A DNA stretch of 64,000 nt from Malacoraja senta (lineage: Eukaryota), in the NCBI GenBank assembly GCA_038087875.1, contig CM075989.1, positions 14,818,001-14,882,000 of the forward strand, written 5' to 3'. The translations under genes were made by a program, and so were the position numbers. Shown here piece after piece: positions 28,609 to 36,500 of this stretch. Under the pieces are notes generated by a model, which was given only the letters and a program-made list of their open reading frames with translations, had not been told where the DNA came from and made no database searches. Every line of letters begins with the position of its first letter. The stretch's first letter is position 1.

Positions 28609-31600
28609 ATTATGAAATTATGCATGAGATTGAATTGTTTTTAATTGCTTGGTAAATCAGTTATGTCAGAACTGTCGTCAGTAGACTATCGGGGCATAGC
28701 GAAAGAGTTTTTCTTCCCACACAAACAACTATTAGTAAATGGAATCTTTAACCACTATAGACTATCAACGTTTATACTTTTGTTTTATCTAAAAGGGAAT
28801 TTGAATTTATAAATGTGAAAACATTCCACGGAGAAAGACTGCACTCAATACATCCAATTAAGGATTTACTACCAACACAGTGGGTTGAATTGCTTCCCTC
28901 TGTGCTATGAATTATTAGGAAAATGGCGAAACAGTGTTCTATGTATAGTAATAACAGCCAAATGAGAAGGCCTTTTATATGGAATATCAAAGATGCTGTA
29001 TCTGTTCAAGGAAAAGTTACAAATTACATGTACAGTACATGCAACTGCTATGCTTCTCCCAAAATGATCTTTCCAGTCACATATTCAAACCAAAGGTTTA
29101 AAAATAAGAGGCTTTCTTTTCAAAAAGCCATCTCTATTTTCTTTGCTGTTCATCTACTTTGAACCACTGCTAGCAAAACATGTTTCAGTATAACTATACG
29201 AAAAATGTTTTAAAATCAATTTATATGACTTGAGTGCAACATCAAAAGCTCATAATTTATACAATTTATGGCTTTCAATAGAATACTTATTTTGCACATT
29301 GCTGTGATGTTTTGCTAAGTTATAATGTTTTTCTGATTACAGTAAAATTGCCATGTACGTTATTGAAGATATTTTAATTATATGTTGAGACAGTTGTCAT
29401 AGAACCAGAGCACAGAAACAGGCCAATCTCACCAAGTTGTCCCATCCAAGCTAGTGTTGTTTGCTCGCATTTGGCCATTACCCTCTTAACCTTTCCTATC
29501 AATCTTCTATCTTGGAATAATTTCAATAGATTAAAAAGGCTCTTAAAATTTTTGCTCTGCCTTATAAAATTTTCAATGAAAGGAATAGTTCTGGATTTAA
29601 CATTTGCAATGTCTCAAAGCACAGTGGAAATAAGTTATTTTAAAATTTGACTTTAGAAGTCAATCTTGCCAATCAGATTAGAAATACAAGAAATTGTATT
29701 ATATTTCATAAATTATTGCATTACCACACAAAAATGGAAAGTTTTTTTTTTCAATTCAAAATATATACATTTGAATAGCATTGTACTTAGCTTTTCAACT
29801 TAGATACAAAAAAACCTTCATTTACTCCTAAAAATTAGTGCACCATGCCCAAAATCTTAAATCTAACAATATCAACACAATCAACATCTTCAATGTTCTT
29901 TGTAGTTTTTATTTGTTTAAAAATCACAATGATGTGCAACTAAAATCTTTAATTGATTGCATCACATGACCAAAGGTCCCGTTATTCTAAAAGTTGTTCT
30001 CAACCACTAAGTGAACCGAAGGGTTAAGCAGAAAAAAACCACAAGATAGGGTGAAGGAAACACAAAAAAGTCAAAATGAGAATATAAAATAAAATAAAAA
30101 CTAAAAATAGGCATTAAAGTACAGAACATCAATATGTCAATAGGTTTCTTTTAAAATTAAGACTGCATTTTAAATTCGTTTCATTTCTTGTCTTGTATGG
30201 TCTTCATTTTTCACATCCGCATTTTTCTAACTTTTCACTAGTGTGCCTGTTTTTAAAGCTGGTTTCCTCCAATGATCACCCTTGCTTTTTAAATAAACAT
30301 TGCTCCCATTTCCAAATGAGCATAGAGACGGGGCTGAGAAATGTGTGTACTCCAGAGTGGGGACAGAGGAACCCCCATCCAGGCACCTTCATCCCCCATC
30401 CCCGAGACCCACATTTTCTTTTTACCCACCCACTTTCACTCCTCTTCCCCATCCCATCCATATCCCTCTCCCTCCCGCTTCACATTTTTCACCACCTCCT
30501 CTTTAATCTGAAATCCTTTTGTCTCCTTTTCACATCTACCCATTGTCCACTCATCTGCCCATCACTTTCCTCACCTGTATCCACCTATCACTTCTCAGGC
30601 TTGGCCCCTCCCCACCTCACTTTTCCAGCGTTCTTCCCCCTTACTAAGAAGGGACCCAACCCAAATCATTTTCCATTCCTTCCACAGATGCTGTCTGGCC
30701 CAGAGTTCGTCAAGCAGGTTGTTTTTTGGCTAAGTATGTGTCCTCTAATTTTACCTACCTCTAATATGGAGGAACCTTTCTTGCATTAGCTTATATTATG
30801 GTAGCTCTATTGTTATATGCAAATTACAATCTCTATAAATCCCAATCAAAAACGATAGGGATTAAGATTCTAAAATGATAAAGGAAGGAAGGTATGAGCA
30901 AGGTAAACTAAGAAAACTGTTTACTGATAAAACAACAATATTACAAATCAAAACAATACGCCACAGGTTTTTGAAAGCCTTCTCTGCCATTCTTCAAAAT
31001 GATGTTCCAACTCATCCAAGTTCTTGCCTTATCACCCAAACACCCTTAAATCTCCAAACTTCCATCTTAGCCCTGAATATATATACTCAACAACTCAGCA
31101 TTCAGGAAATTTGAGCAACACAGTGAATTTGGTTAAATTGCTTTTAACCAGCGAAATAAGTCATCTAATTGTGTAAAAGAAAACCAAATATGGATTTGTT
31201 GTTGGCAGGACTGAAGACCATGAAAATGAAAATGCCAACCAGACTTTTCTCAGTTTGGGCAAAAAATCAAAATAGCGAGATAATATCTCGCCGCCAATTC
31301 ACATAGTTAATCTTTGACTCCATTTATCAATTTCAATTGTGCCATTGTGGAAAATATAAATATTGCTAAACTACAGGTGGAAAATTGTTAATGAAGAAGT
31401 TTCGTTGGTGAGCTGTGGATTGCAGAAATAGATAGTGCAACAGCTTATTTCCAATAACGCTGGCGTAAAAAATTATGAAATGCGGAAATCGTTCTTTCTA
31501 TGTACCGTACTTAACATTTGAAACAAAGATATACTATACGATAAATGCCTATGATTGCCACATAGTTTGGCCTTATCGCAAAGGATTGCGCTCAGAGCAA

Positions 31601-32021
31601 CACTCATGATAACATACACTATCAATATGCTTGATTTCCTAATTTTGACAATATCCTGATCCAACAATAATCCAGCAACCCACAGCGCTATAGACGGCGA
31701 GTCCTCGCCTCCGCCTCCAATAACACCGGTTGACAAATGTGGCCGGTGTGGACAGGGTCGCACTGTGGAGAGGTGGGGTCAGGCTGTTGGGGAAACACCC
31801 TTGCCCCCGGGCTGTGAGGGTGGACAGGACAAGAGAGAAGGCTGGACATGAACTAAAGATGAGACAGGCCCTGCCCTGCCCTGCCCGGCCCGGCCCGGCT
31901 GCGATTCACATCCAGCAGCAGCGCCGGTTGATCGACCCCGGGACATCGCTGGACTGTCCGCCCCGATGGACAGCGACGCGTTTGCACGCGGGGCCCCGGA
32001 CGCGGCCTTGTCTTGCCTTAC

Positions 32022-32170
32022 CTGCCTCCCCTCAGCCGGAGGTGCCTCACGCTGTGTACTGGTTAAAACCACCATCCACACCCGGCCCTTGTGATGTTTT
32101 GACTGACGACGAGCAGTGACGACGGCCGAGCGAAGCGTCAATACAAGCAGCACGAGGCCGCGCCGCATTG
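32022..32170 (-). other. CCPG1: CCPG1 exon 1 (5' UTR); 5' boundary approximate
   Basis: Strong donor GAGGCAG|gtaagg at 32022/32021 within the CpG island. Position matches the head-to-head arrangement in human. Confidence 0.7.
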
Positions 32171-32309
32171 TGGGACTTGCAGTCCCGCGGCTCGAAGTCA
32201 GCGCCGGGGCCGCCGCGTCACCGGACTACGCCGCCCAGAATGCAGCGCGCGTCGCGCTGGCAGCGTCCGCCGCGGAACACGTCGCCTTCGAACAACCCAA
32301 TCAGGCGTG

Positions 32310-32323
32310 GTTACCATGGCAGC
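32310..32323 (+). promoter_or_regulatory. RFX X-box upstream of PIERCE2
   Basis: GTTACCATGGCAGC is one mismatch from the consensus GTTACCATGGCAAC and lies about 150 bp upstream of a motile-cilia gene. Confidence 0.75.
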
Positions 32324-32473
32324 GCTGCCACAACAAAGCAGGCGGGGAGCGAGTGGGACAGAGTGGGAGCTTAGAACGGAGCAAGTGGGGCAATTAGGGA
32401 CAGAGGCGCCGGAGTGAGGAACCCTGTGGCCCATAGGGCGCCGGAGAAAGCCGTCGGGAAGACAAGAGTCACC

Positions 32474-33436
32474 ATGGCTGACTGTCCCGTCCCATCGCCT
32501 GCTCGAAGGGTCCAGTTCAAAGAACCAGAATGTGACGACTTCAAGCAGCCCTTCTTTGTTCCAAAGCAGGAATCTAATGAGCCGCCGAGGGATCTCAATT
32601 CGTCTCCCACTCGTAAGGTCCATCTTAAGGACAGCGAGTTCGACTGTCTCAACCAATTCATCGCTTCGAAGCCTGATTCTGGTGCTGTAACTTGCGATGA
32701 TCAAAACCCGCCGCCCATCACAAATAATGAATCTGAAGAGTGCGAAGCGAACAATCGGCCCTTTGCTCCAAAGGCGGACTTCGAAGACTCCGCGCATGAT
32801 GATCCCTGTGCCCCAAACACTGGAATGGATGGATTTAGAAATTCAGTCTGCGACGACCTCAGCACATCCTTCGCTCCAGCTGTTGTTGGTATTAAGGACT
32901 CCATCTGTGACAACTACTGTTTCACTCCAGGGGAGCCTTTGGGAGATCCGTTGCGTGATGATTTCAACCCTTCCACTTCTTTAATAGTTCCCTTGGATTC
33001 AATATGTCACGACCTAAAATCAGGCCTTGAATGCAAAGACGCAAGTGGTGATCTCACGATATCCTATGCTCCACAAGTTGAGGACAAAAAGGAAACGAGT
33101 TGCGACGATCCTATTCCCGTCCGCCCTCCAACGACAAAGGATAAGAAGCTGTGGTTTCCCTGTGCGAACCCTGGAAACCCTGTCTTTTCCTGCATGGAAA
33201 AGATCCCAACGTCGCCACAATCCCCGGCTCCATTCGTGAAACCCCAGAATCCGCTGTTCAGAACAACCTCTGCCGATTATGGATCCAATGAACCGACTTG
33301 TGACATTGCACCCTCTGTCTACAAACCCCTATCGCAGTCGTTCTCGGCGGCGCTCCACACCGGTGGGATGTATCGTAACAGCTCCCTGAACACTACGTCG
33401 GATAAGAAGAGAATTCACGATTTACTCGCGCTTTGA
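32474..33436 (+). CDS. PIERCE2: PIERCE2 (C15orf65) orthologue, 320 aa, single ORF with long N-terminal repeat extension
   Basis: Strong Kozak GTCACCATGG. The C-terminal PCANPGNPVFSCM...KPQ...FRTTSADYG...QSFS...GMYRNSSLNT matches the Pierce (DUF4490) family. Syntenic between CCPG1 and DNAAF4. Confidence 0.9.
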   Translation: MADCPVPSPARRVQFKEPECDDFKQPFFVPKQESNEPPRDLNSSPTRKVHLKDSEFDCLNQFIASKPDSGAVTCDDQNPPPITNNESEECEANNRPFAPKADFEDSAHDDPCAPNTGMDGFRNSVCDDLSTSFAPAVVGIKDSICDNYCFTPGEPLGDPLRDDFNPSTSLIVPLDSICHDLKSGLECKDASGDLTISYAPQVEDKKETSCDDPIPVRPPTTKDKKLWFPCANPGNPVFSCMEKIPTSPQSPAPFVKPQNPLFRTTSADYGSNEPTCDIAPSVYKPLSQSFSAALHTGGMYRNSSLNTTSDKKRIHDLLAL

Positions 33437-33559
33437 TTTTCTGCCCCCGAACAGTTCTGTATTACTATAGTAAGAAAGTGAAAACAAATGTTCCCTTTTT
33501 CTTTCAATGCCAGATTTTGGAAGAGAATGGTATACAACCAGATGGAATTTGAGACTCTT

Positions 33560-33585
33560 GGTGTGTGTGTGTGTGTGTGTGTGTG
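33560..33585 (+). repeat. (GT)n microsatellite in the putative PIERCE2 3' UTR
   Basis: Seen directly in the sequence. Confidence 0.95.
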
Positions 33586-36500
33586 CGTGGAAAACAAAAA
33601 CAATTTGATCGTTTGTATATTTAAAAATAATTTTCTGTGGTAATATGCCCGTCTATAATATAGGGGGGTTTTCAGACCTTTACCGTGACTTTTGTTTCCA
33701 TTTGCATTCATTTAGCATTTTACATTTGCAGATAAAGGAATCGAATCATGGAAAAATTAAAACCCGAGGCTATTCATCGCGTCTTTTTCATCAGTCTAAT
33801 CCTTCAGTATATCCTTTAGTCTCTTGCCTTGAGATCAGGTTCTTCTGGCACATGTCCAAGGACATTTAAATACGATAAAAGTTGCTATCCTTTCCGGTAG
33901 TGAGTTCCAGATCAGGGTCAAACTTTAATGGTAAAGTCTTTATCACTCTCCTCTTGTACCAATCAATACTTCCTGTTTTTGTTTTTGCCCTTGCCCTTCC
34001 ACGTGTTCTGAGAGGGGCTGCAGTTGGACATCTTTCTTGCAGACAGTCGTCGGGGACATGGCTACAAATCTGGTCTCTTACATCTGACAGGAGCGGAGCT
34101 AACTGTGCTGACTGTCATTTATTGCTCTTCTGCCTTTTCCAGCCATTTGTTTAGTGTTTGATTTCTAATTCCATCTCTCATTCACACTGCAAAATTGCAA
34201 CAAAAAAAACGTTATAACTTTATAGCAGTTCCCAATTCTCTTGGCGTGGATTCCAGTGATTTCAAAGTTAGACTTAAATTGCCATAGTGATTTTGAGTGA
34301 ATCTAAATGATTTAGACAGCTGCACATTTGGCCAGGCATTCTCCAAAGATTTGAAACTTTTAATCCTGAAGAAGGGCCTTTGCAGTTGTATGCTGAACCT
34401 TCTTTGAGGTAAAAACAAGTGAAAATGTCCAGTTTGGTTTAAGGAACATGGTGCCTCTGGCTTCAGATTAGTACCAATCGCGTGAGTGCAATGCAACTCA
34501 ACCTACCGAGAAATAAAGAACTTTGCCTTGCCAACAAAAGGAGCTTCATCACCGAGTCCAAGCACTGACTCTTTATAACTCTTGTATTCTTTTGTCTATG
34601 AGGTCACTCTCTAATTATTCTCATTCACTCATTGACCAGATAACCGTGTTTACAGTTTATCCCCATAGTCACTCCAGTTTTATGCTATCAGATATGTCTC
34701 CCTGCCCCCCCCCCCCCTCCCAACTTAACAAACTTATTTTGTCTCCTTACCAGTTCTGATGAAGTGTCTCTGACATGAAACATAGCTCTTGTTTCTTTTC
34801 CCACAGATGCAATCTAAGCTGCCAAGTGTTTACAGCATTTTATGGTTTAAGAACCGACTCTTTGATAAGGGCTCCAAGTCTTCTTTTGGAGCAATGTGTT
34901 TTTTGTTGCCTTATATTTCTCAGTTTAAAAGGAGATTAACTAAAATATATCCTAAAATGCCTGCTGCAAAGGAAAGGTTGGCTCCCATTAACATTGTCTG
35001 ACAGGAGGTACTGAAAGTGCAATTCTTATAAACAGACATGTGCTACTGAAATAAACAATCGCCAAGCACCCTAACCTTTAGAGACAACATGTATCGCGAG
35101 GTTATTAATCACTGATGATGATCAGAAAGAACATGGCATTACTTATATTTATGAATCATTACAGACAAACAATGATAATTTGAATAAAACCAAAAAGGGT
35201 TAATGGATTTAACCAGGGCATCTAGTTAACATCAGGTAAGCCGTTTAGCAACAAGTTGAAAAACACATTCTCACAGACTGAAATCTTTCTGGACTTTCCA
35301 ACTCTGAATCAGATCTATGCCAATATCAGGAGAGACCAAATGGTGGCGAAGAAGTAGTATACATCAGACAACGTCATAGAGCGGTCAGCGAGTACTCAAA
35401 AATGCTTGAGTCAATGAAGTTTCATGCCATCAGATTAAACATGGGCAAGGAACCGTATTGTACATTACTGATTGCCTCTCCTTTCCCTAGTTGGTTTATC
35501 AGTACGACACACTAATTGCCACTTTAAAGAGTTAGTGGGGATAGGACATGTGCATAACTTAACAAGTGTAACTCGGCATCACCATTATTAACTTTGATGG
35601 CCACATTCTGAAAGACATATGGCATATTGGTCTTGTAGGAGGTGGTGAGAAAATCCACACAAGGGGAAAAATCCTAGTGATCTAACAAAACTAAACTTCA
35701 TGCATTCACTTTCAAGCAGCCTGCATGATCATCTGTTGTATCCATTCCCACCACCAACAGCACACCAAGTCTGCAATGTTCACCATTTTTAGGATATACT
35801 TGCAGCAACTAGGGTGGCGCAGGCTCGGTAGAGCTGCTGCCTTACAGCACAAATAAATGAATTAGAAAGAGGTCAATGGGGCCTTGAGCAATTGAATACC
35901 TGAAAGGATTGTGATATGATTTAGAGCCAGGGATGAAGGAATGGCAATATAATTCCAGGTGAGTTTGATGTGCTGTTTTGGAGGAAAACCTGCAGCTGAC
36001 GAAGACAAGAGACTGCAAGTGCTGGAATCTTGGCAATAACATTTTTGAACCTGCAGGTGATGGTGTTCTCACATATTCATTGACCTTGTCTTTATGGGTG
36101 ACAAAAGTCACGTTTTGGGAAGTGTTAGAGCAGCCCAAGCAAACATAATTTTAAATCTTTCCAAATATTTACACTTTTTGTTCTTTTGCCTTCTCTAAAT
36201 AGCAAATCTATGAATGGGTTCTCAAAACACACACCTATGTATAGAGAGGACACTGGGGAAATAAATATGCTTGCTGTCCTTCAAAACTTTCCCCACAATA
36301 CTGCTCCATCATAATTGCAAGCATTCATATTTGTCTCATCTTGATGGGTCCAAGCTAACTTGTTTTCTTTTCAATTTCCTTCTTTATAACGTTAACTTTT
36401 AACCAGTTACAACACACTGGTACTCTACACAAGTTTCTGTTTTTATGCAGGTAGCCTGCACATGAGCTTCGGAGGCCAGTGACAATACTTCCTGATCAAT

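Follow-up and report, generated by a model that had tools for sequence, protein, structure and literature searches.

We analysed a 64,000-nucleotide stretch of the genome of the skate Malacoraja senta (assembly GCA_038087875.1, contig CM075989.1, positions 14,818,001 to 14,882,000; hereafter the window), which contains a gene for an unusually long form of the microtubule inner protein PIERCE2. A single uninterrupted open reading frame (ORF) runs from 32414 to 33436 on the plus strand. Its first ATG in the ORF listing stands at 32474 in the context gtcaccATGg, with an in-frame TAG upstream at 32372-32374. The complete coding sequence (CDS; 32474-33436, +), delimited by the ORF, the Pfam match and the CDS ranges of orthologues, is one exon of 320 codons plus stop. 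The Pfam family PF14892 (PIRC1_2) matches residues 242-311 (E 2.8e-13; 50.3 bits against a gathering cut-off of 27) and covers profile positions 29-102 of 103. Two parts can be distinguished: a conserved Pierce part of about 92 C-terminal residues (PCANPGNPVFSCM ... GMYRN.SLNT ...; 33158-33433, +; Pfam portion 33197-33406), and an N-terminal extension of 228 residues (aa 1-228; 32474-33157, +) that ends before the conserved PCANPGNPVFSCM core, appears to be confined to elasmobranch PIERCE2 and is built from decayed copies of an 18-residue unit.

Several lines of evidence identify the gene as the skate orthologue of PIERCE2 (C15orf65 / CCPG1OS), encoded in one exon divergently from CCPG1 and with its Pierce domain intact. 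Against solved chains, the skate protein scored 50-60 bits with PIERCE2 (human, cattle, mouse and a fourth entry; 7UNG_G, 7RRO_G, 8I7R_N), over skate residues 218-316, and 23-38 bits with PIERCE1, and its closest named database matches were C15orf65/PIERCE2 of Xenopus, Scleropages, platypus and amphioxus. The mammalian landmarks PCxNPGNPVFSCM ... GxY.N..LNT are shared. The SNYG-type motif, [ST]-N-x-x-[ILVY]-G before a short helix (PMC10973386), is matched in part at most by skate TTSADYG (aa 264-270): Tyr-Gly is invariant across elasmobranchs, but Thr/Ser stands at the Asn position, as it does in the Xenopus protein. In a Rhinoraja locus that matches the window colinearly to either side of the gene, the PIERCE2 gene for 305 residues measures exactly 918 nt, and some 750 bp separate its start from an annotated CCPG1 (PF27636, PF27631) on the opposite strand. 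The mammalian gene has the same head-to-head neighbour, and the mouse gene is named Ccpg1os (PMC8595878). The CDS range equals 3x(aa+1) in six orthologues (Rhinoraja, Carcharodon, Scyliorhinus, Mobula, Heterodontus and Hypanus), and their coding sequences are therefore intronless. A preliminary description of this stretch had proposed an intronless PIERCE2 of unusual length. The identity is borne out by PF14892, the best solved-structure matches and the position head-to-head with CCPG1, and the absence of introns holds in the window gene and in the six orthologue annotations. The protein has 2.6 times the usual length: solved mammalian PIERCE2 chains have 120-122 aa, with about 25 residues ahead of the core and no 18-residue repeats, against 228 residues in the skate.

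The N-terminal extension and its repeat units

The extension, or tail, is rich in Pro, Asp, Ser and Cys, with 12 Cys and 28 Pro, a net charge of -20 and an isoelectric point (pI) of 4.4; the first 241 residues of the protein hold 31 P, 29 D, 21 S and 14 C. CDD occurs four times in the tail and C[DH][DN] six times, and either count was reached by 0 of 20,000 shuffles. A stop-free frame of equal length likewise arose in 0 of 20,000 mononucleotide shuffles. Repetition was assessed by ungapped BLOSUM62 self-comparison in windows of 10 residues, off the diagonal, against 300 composition-preserving shuffles. The window protein gave 13 pairs scoring at least 25 (expected 2.06), Carcharodon gave 80 (expected 0.85) and Heterodontus 156 (expected 1.3), and none of the 300 shuffles reached the observed count in any of the three. 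These results indicate internal repetition beyond chance, much stronger in sharks, ahead of the Pierce domain, where the preliminary description had placed repeats. It had also noted that the units are diverged at the DNA level, and Tandem Repeats Finder indeed reported no array there.

To define the unit, a hidden Markov model (HMM) was seeded on Heterodontus and iterated over ten tails, converging on EFKDSVCDDLNLSFAPKVE, the last Glu of which is common to adjoining units and gives a period of 18. A consensus of 37 units suggests an ancestral unit of 18 residues close to [QE]FKDSVCDD[LF]NxSFAPKV. Sharks carry 8-9 units in exact 18-residue phase. In the window protein, six unit-HMM matches of at least 2 bits summed to 72.7 bits, and the most that 500 shuffles produced was one match and 5.8 bits; this test is partly circular for the skate, whose sequence was in the training set, and the dot-plot comparison described above is the independent one. 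About 11 units can be read by eye from the alignment in the skate tail. The repeat proposed earlier, of about 12 units of 13-19 residues, is thus real and better described as an 18-residue tandem unit in about 11 decayed copies, and the consensus then offered, hKDSxCDDhxPxFAP, was essentially right when set against the unit HMM.

All units lie on the plus strand. Unit 1 (QFKEPECDD..., 32513-32572) scored 21.7 bits with the unit HMM. Unit 2 (KVHLKDSEFDC..., 32615-32671) has a shifted or decayed core; it aligns with shark KVHFKDSVCD, and the HMM matches its tail end only. Unit 3 (...AVTCDDQNPP..., 32672-32728) scored 6.7 bits. Units 4 and 5 (CEANNRPFAP and FEDSAHDDPCAP, 32729-32824), read by eye and under the HMM threshold, sit in an insertion that sharks are without; unit 4 is shared with Mobula and Hypanus, and unit 5 occurs in skates only. 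Unit 6 (FRNSVCDDLSTSFAPAV, 32825-32884; 23.4 bits) is the best kept, with S124 and C126 invariant in 10 species, and is followed by unit 7 (IKDSICDN..., 32885-32929; 9.3 bits). In unit 8 (DPLRDDFNPS, 32930-32986; 9.1 bits) Arg replaces Cys in every species, and R161, D162, N165 and P166 are invariant. Units 9 and 10 (PLDSICHDL... and ECKDASGDLTISYAPQVE, 32987-33082), with invariant C178 and C187, are the positional orthologues of shark DSVCDDxRLSFAPKGE and ECKDLVSDDxNQSFAPKVE. Unit 11 (KKETSCDDPIPVRPP, 33083-33133) aligns with the extreme N-terminus of the 115-aa chimaera protein (MCDEPSPIPAP) and is probably, on this alignment, the ancestral copy. The skate array is decayed and interrupted, with two extra units.

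Distribution and age of the extension

Full-length orthologues (272-322 aa, no stops) were found in at least 14 named shark, ray and skate species. A word-index search yielded nine proteins (272-356 aa) that span 98-100% of the query and are 45-88% identical to it (Rhinoraja, Carcharodon, Heterodontus, Scyliorhinus, Mobula, Rhincodon, Chiloscyllium, Hypanus and one Logan contig), to which the cluster listing added Amblyraja radiata (321 aa, "C15orf65 homolog"), Leucoraja erinacea (322 aa), Hemiscyllium, Chiloscyllium punctatum and Scyliorhinus torazame. The ten sequences that we aligned are all open from a common start, with the stretch following Met1 conserved in every species. Stops and frameshifts were looked for in the orthologues and none was found. 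Tail positions that are invariant in the ten species include A10, R11, Q14, F15, D40, S124, C126, D142, R161, D162, N165, P166, C178, C187, A199 and E207.

An exhaustive phmmer search of 1.84 billion representative sequences gave 117 matches. Residues 1-209 of the query were matched by three elasmobranch representatives only, and the other 114 matches, mostly 70-200 aa long, covered residues 184-320 only. With the shark N-terminus alone as the query, a word-index search recovered nothing beyond shark PIERCE2, and four elasmobranch tails searched against Pfam at E up to 10 gave no family, only two chance-level matches of 9-15 residues. Other long Pierce proteins were considered as possible bearers of the array (Elysia, 259 aa; hedgehog, 222 aa; a pangolin isoform, 188 aa; an unnamed protein, 264 aa), and none has the repeat.

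The best of the 114 non-elasmobranch matches was the Callorhinchus milii (chimaera) protein, of 115 aa, represented by two UniProt entries (A0A4W3GFE1 / V9KXT7). It aligns end-to-end with skate residues 210-320 at 48% identity (E 2e-32) and differs in being without the repeat array. Judged from these protein entries, the chimaera represents the outgroup state, and the extension appears restricted to elasmobranch PIERCE2. The lineage-specificity proposed earlier can thus be made more precise: the extension is elasmobranch-wide and occurs neither in the 115-aa chimaera protein nor in any of the 114 non-elasmobranch Pierce matches. The chimaera N-terminus, MCDEPSPIPAP, aligns with the last skate unit, SCDDPIPVRPP, and has C, D, [DE], P, A and P in common with the unit CDDLNPSFAP. 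Over some ten residues only, this resemblance suggests growth of the array by duplication of an ancestral N-terminal peptide, probably in the elasmobranch stem.

Across elasmobranch pairs, the Pierce part is 71-96% identical and the extension 31-87%. Tail identity is 74-87% among skates, 57-70% among four shark orders and 31-49% between sharks and batoids, with the Pierce part of these last pairs within the overall range. The units are orthologous by position; RDDFNPS, with Arg for Cys, is the identical unit in each species. The array is therefore older than the split between sharks and batoids and has not been homogenised since. Concerted evolution is absent, the units having kept their individual identities since these lineages diverged.

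Predicted placement and role of the extension

In the bovine doublet, the N-termini of Pierce1 and Pierce2 are luminal and bind CFAP53, and the conserved C-terminal region reaches outside (Gui et al. 2021, PMC8595878). The crossing of the A-tubule wall, from CFAP53 to the CCDC114/151 docking complex, is known for the bovine, human, mouse and pig proteins only (PMC8595878; solved structures). Given the luminal N-termini of the bovine proteins, the elasmobranch tail should therefore lie inside the A-tubule, and by this analogy it is probably not on the axoneme surface. AlphaFold2, run on the ten-sequence alignment, gave a mean predicted local distance difference test (pLDDT) score of 38.7 and no secondary structure anywhere. 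A low pLDDT is expected of the Pierce part, which is ordered inside the doublet only. The tail alone, hydrophilic (grand average of hydropathy -0.75) and with its 20 net negative charges, is probably intrinsically disordered.

The family offers a precedent for such N-terminal additions in Chlamydomonas FAP182 / Tetrahymena CFAP182, where a wall-crossing Pierce-type C-terminus is joined to a much larger luminal N-terminal part; in algal FAP182 a large N-terminal domain sits on the same type of C-terminus (PMC8595878). CFAP182A matches the skate protein at E 6e-4. The two additions differ in kind: that of FAP182 folds as a nucleotidyltransferase domain, unrelated in sequence, and is not a disordered array of short repeats.

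The 18-residue array has extended the N-terminus of this PIERCE2 from some 25 residues to 228, and we put at about 60% the probability of the reading as a whole, in which the tail most likely serves as a luminal inner-protein segment. In such a scheme, the ancestral N-terminal peptide would have duplicated in the elasmobranch stem to give the tandem array. The tail would hang from the luminal Pierce end on CFAP53, and the conserved C-terminal part would thread the wall and reach the docking complex of the outer dynein arms. The tail would then most likely be an added luminal segment, the repeated short Cys/Asp motifs of which may make multiple weak contacts with CFAP53/MNS1 or with the luminal tubulin surface; alternatively, the tail may cross-link through its Cys residues, by metal or disulfide.

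Several observations weigh against this scheme. The luminal placement is an extrapolation from the bovine structure, and the resemblance between the chimaera N-terminus and the repeat unit extends over about 10 residues and scores 2.3 bits with the unit HMM. The tail of Rhinoraja gave no pairs scoring at least 25 in the self-comparison (expected 1.13; reached by 300 of 300 shuffles), which is not significant. The net charge of the tail ranges from -20 to +0.8 among species. In three skates with DNA (the window, the Rhinoraja locus and a Logan contig of a related skate, L001), the tail diverges as fast as the 3' flank: relative to the window, nucleotide identity with L001 and Rhinoraja is 91.2% and 80.8% in the tail, 90.3% and 85.9% in the 3' flank, and 97.5% and 93.9% in the Pierce part. 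The variable tail sites fall 28/33/45 by codon position (p 0.12, not significant). Finally, NCBI annotates isoforms of the bamboo sharks Chiloscyllium plagiosum and C. punctatum (158 aa, P0142; 209 aa, P0143) in which the repeats are kept and the Pierce domain is lost: the tail continues to residue 148 or 199 and is followed by a short downstream exon (…LDKAAFGRT), spliced from inside the ORF. Given these isoforms, not every product need be wall-piercing. In the skate window, a search of the 6.5 kb downstream turned up no counterpart of the LDKAAFGRT exon.

Several of these points would also fit a different explanation, in which the tail is a tolerated, disordered and functionless passenger, whose frame stays open only because the Pierce domain would be lost with any stop or frameshift. 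The ratio of nonsynonymous to synonymous rates (dN/dS), calculated by the Nei-Gojobori method for the same three skates, is 0.48, 0.69 and 0.67 in the tail (dS 0.13-0.20; Fisher p 0.013, 0.087 and 0.058). Such values of 0.5-0.7, a nucleotide identity equal to that of the non-coding flank, the non-significant codon-position bias, the decay of the repeats in batoids to non-significance in Rhinoraja, a net charge that is not conserved and the lack of predicted structure are what a passenger would show. For the Pierce part, dN/dS could not be estimated from its 2-3 synonymous differences. Its dS of 0.03-0.05 is about four times below that of the tail of the same exon, a difference that rests on small counts and may be chance.

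The open frame speaks only weakly for the repeats: the essential Pierce domain lies downstream, and any stop or frameshift would abolish it as well. The earlier argument that a stop-free frame implies selection thus says little as it was put; selection is better indicated by retained length, by unit orthology and by the Cys/Asp core. In-frame deletions would cost a passenger nothing, yet all full-length forms retain 180-230 residues, and the tail indels, all in frame, measure 3, 3, 3, 6, 18 and 33 nt. Units are orthologous position by position, with 17 invariant residues, and the tail identities, both for sharks against batoids (31-49%) and within sharks across orders (57-70%), lie, by our own estimate, above the neutral level. 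Conservation is moreover centred on the unit core. Shark-batoid identity is 0.69 at Cys7, 0.51 at Asp8, 0.48 at Asp4, 0.43 at Ala15 and 0.41 at Ser5, and falls to 0.07 at Val6 and Phe14, with most remaining positions at 0.07-0.35. The D-S-x-C-D-D core is the best-conserved portion of the unit. The constraint on the tail is real but weak and centred on motifs, a pattern expected for short linear motifs in a disordered chain. On balance, we consider a functionless passenger possible, if on the unlikely side.

A more specific form of the luminal-segment reading concerns the lattice itself. Inner proteins commonly read the lattice through short peptide modules that occur in repeated copies (Andersen et al. 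2024, PMC10973386), and the tail has a putative parallel in repeat-type modules such as Mn/SAXO (PF05217), PYG and GFG (PMC10973386), short tandem luminal peptide units that contact successive tubulins. The 18-residue D-S-x-C-D-D...F-A-P-K unit might be a new lattice-reading repeat of the lumen, with one tubulin monomer per unit (about 4 nm, at 2.3 Å per residue), so that 9-11 units, laid along CFAP53 or a protofilament, would extend some 37-45 nm and come close to the 48-nm period of the inner proteins. The elasmobranch unit differs from those modules in being acidic and Cys-containing, and its tubulin binding is putative. Neither the 18-residue unit nor any of the four elasmobranch tails searched matched Mn/SAXO, PYG, GFG or any Pfam repeat. 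The language-model neighbours of the tail alone (SAXO, CFAP90/FAM183/SPMIP11 and CFAP68 clusters) had scores of 0.71-0.74, which are not significant. We regard this tubulin-by-tubulin register as doubtful. If it were true, the tail would be an extra longitudinal brace in elasmobranch doublets, probably those of sperm, tied across the wall to the docking complex of the dynein arms, and the conserved Cys of the unit could permit metal or disulfide locking.

The preliminary description had instead envisaged an acidic, possibly metal-binding or spacer module on the axoneme, which implies a place outside the doublet, at the outer-dynein-arm docking site. The tail is acidic and Cys/Asp-rich, with a pI of 4.3-5.0 in nine of the ten species, and its D-S-x-C-D-D core holds plausible metal ligands. 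The acidity nevertheless stops short of Mobula, whose tail is neutral (pI 7.5), and is slight in Hypanus (charge -5.5). Since it is not universal, a purely charge- or metal-based role is weakened, and the Pfam search of the tails gave no match to a known metal-binding family. The extension, furthermore, is on the N-terminal end, which in the bovine doublet is luminal on CFAP53, so that the axoneme surface is probably the wrong side. The tail is probably not an external spacer, and we consider an outside module of either kind very unlikely.

Promoter, transcripts and meaning for the Pierce family

Upstream of the gene, the composition profile reveals a G+C-rich promoter island (31600-32600; 0.59-0.65, surroundings 0.3-0.4) common to the divergent CCPG1 (-) and PIERCE2 (+). 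Within it, about 150 bp upstream of the ATG, a palindromic site resembling the X-box of RFX factors, GTTACCATGGCAGC (32310-32323), with one mismatch to GTNRCCNNRGYAAC, stands beside a CCAAT box. A block of about 60 nt holding both (window 32296-32345) is kept in Rhinoraja with one spacer change. X-box-like motifs are not above chance in the window as a whole (5 found, 3.9 expected). As a lead only, the site and the CCAAT box fit a ciliary promoter that would drive transcription through the repeats. A GA-rich minisatellite of GGGACAGAGAGTGGG-like units follows, between this block and the ATG. It is very short in the window (32336-32365), has several copies in contigs of a related skate (L001 1-70) and reaches about 330 bp in Rhinoraja (L002 about 3520-3850). 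An antisense ORF of 199 aa (32198-32797, -) was set aside as a chance product of G+C-rich DNA, every minus frame of both other skates carrying 2-7 stops.

Of the read sets, X6 and X7 cover 30.9-36 kb evenly (about 32x and 3x), which marks them as DNA and not RNA. X1 and X2, RNA by guess, match interspersed repeats only and nothing on 32156-33800, despite word shares of 0.15-0.19, and decide neither way. Three Logan contigs of a related skate (L001, L003 and L004; 1.2-2.4 kb) are colinear with the window at about 89-90% identity; they end in the GA-rich minisatellite, a (GT)n run or an interspersed repeat, with no poly(A), and complementary and genomic DNA are indistinguishable in them. That the repeats are missing from the mature protein, through a downstream start or removal from the mRNA that leaves a PIERCE2 of about 120 aa, is highly improbable: skates have an internal Met (aa 117) and NCBI annotates bamboo-shark splicing from inside the ORF, yet Met117 lies in a skate-only insertion and not in sharks or rays, no other ATG stands ahead of the conserved core, the context of the first ATG is strong and conserved in three skates and the N-terminal residues are conserved in all species, the species seen have no stops and in-frame indels only, and the annotated bamboo-shark variants drop the Pierce domain, not the repeats.

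Elsewhere in the window, an intact Tc1/mariner-type transposase ORF of 339 aa (7321-8340, -; HTH_Tnp_Tc3_2, Sleeping Beauty helix-turn-helix and DDE_3 domains) probably lies, by its position, within a CCPG1 intron. High-copy interspersed repeats occupy 30500-30870, 34620-34915 and 35650-36000, where contig word depth in the DNA read sets climbs from about 32 into the hundreds or tens of thousands and loose ends are numerous, and a (GT)n run at 33551-33596 breaks contigs.

A literature search found no paper on the elasmobranch PIERCE2 tail, and the long elasmobranch proteins are catalogued in NCBI as "uncharacterized protein LOC...". PIERCE2 was known as a wall-piercing inner protein; what had not been described is its N-terminal repeat tail, present throughout elasmobranchs. 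The tail is an evolutionary curiosity from which a testable prediction about structure follows, and not a new kind of system. To our knowledge, the Pierce proteins are the sole inner proteins that thread the doublet wall, tying the 48-nm luminal pattern to the 24-nm docking pattern of the outer dynein arms. A class-level vertebrate lineage has kept a repeat tail of about 200 residues on the predicted luminal end of one Pierce paralogue since before sharks and batoids diverged, roughly 250-300 million years ago. Fish and mice that lose Pierce proteins show defects of laterality and motility (PMC8595878). The elasmobranch tail offers a defined target for cryo-electron microscopy of cartilaginous-fish cilia or sperm, in which extra density might be seen beside CFAP53, and a natural experiment on how much extra material the luminal Pierce end tolerates or exploits.

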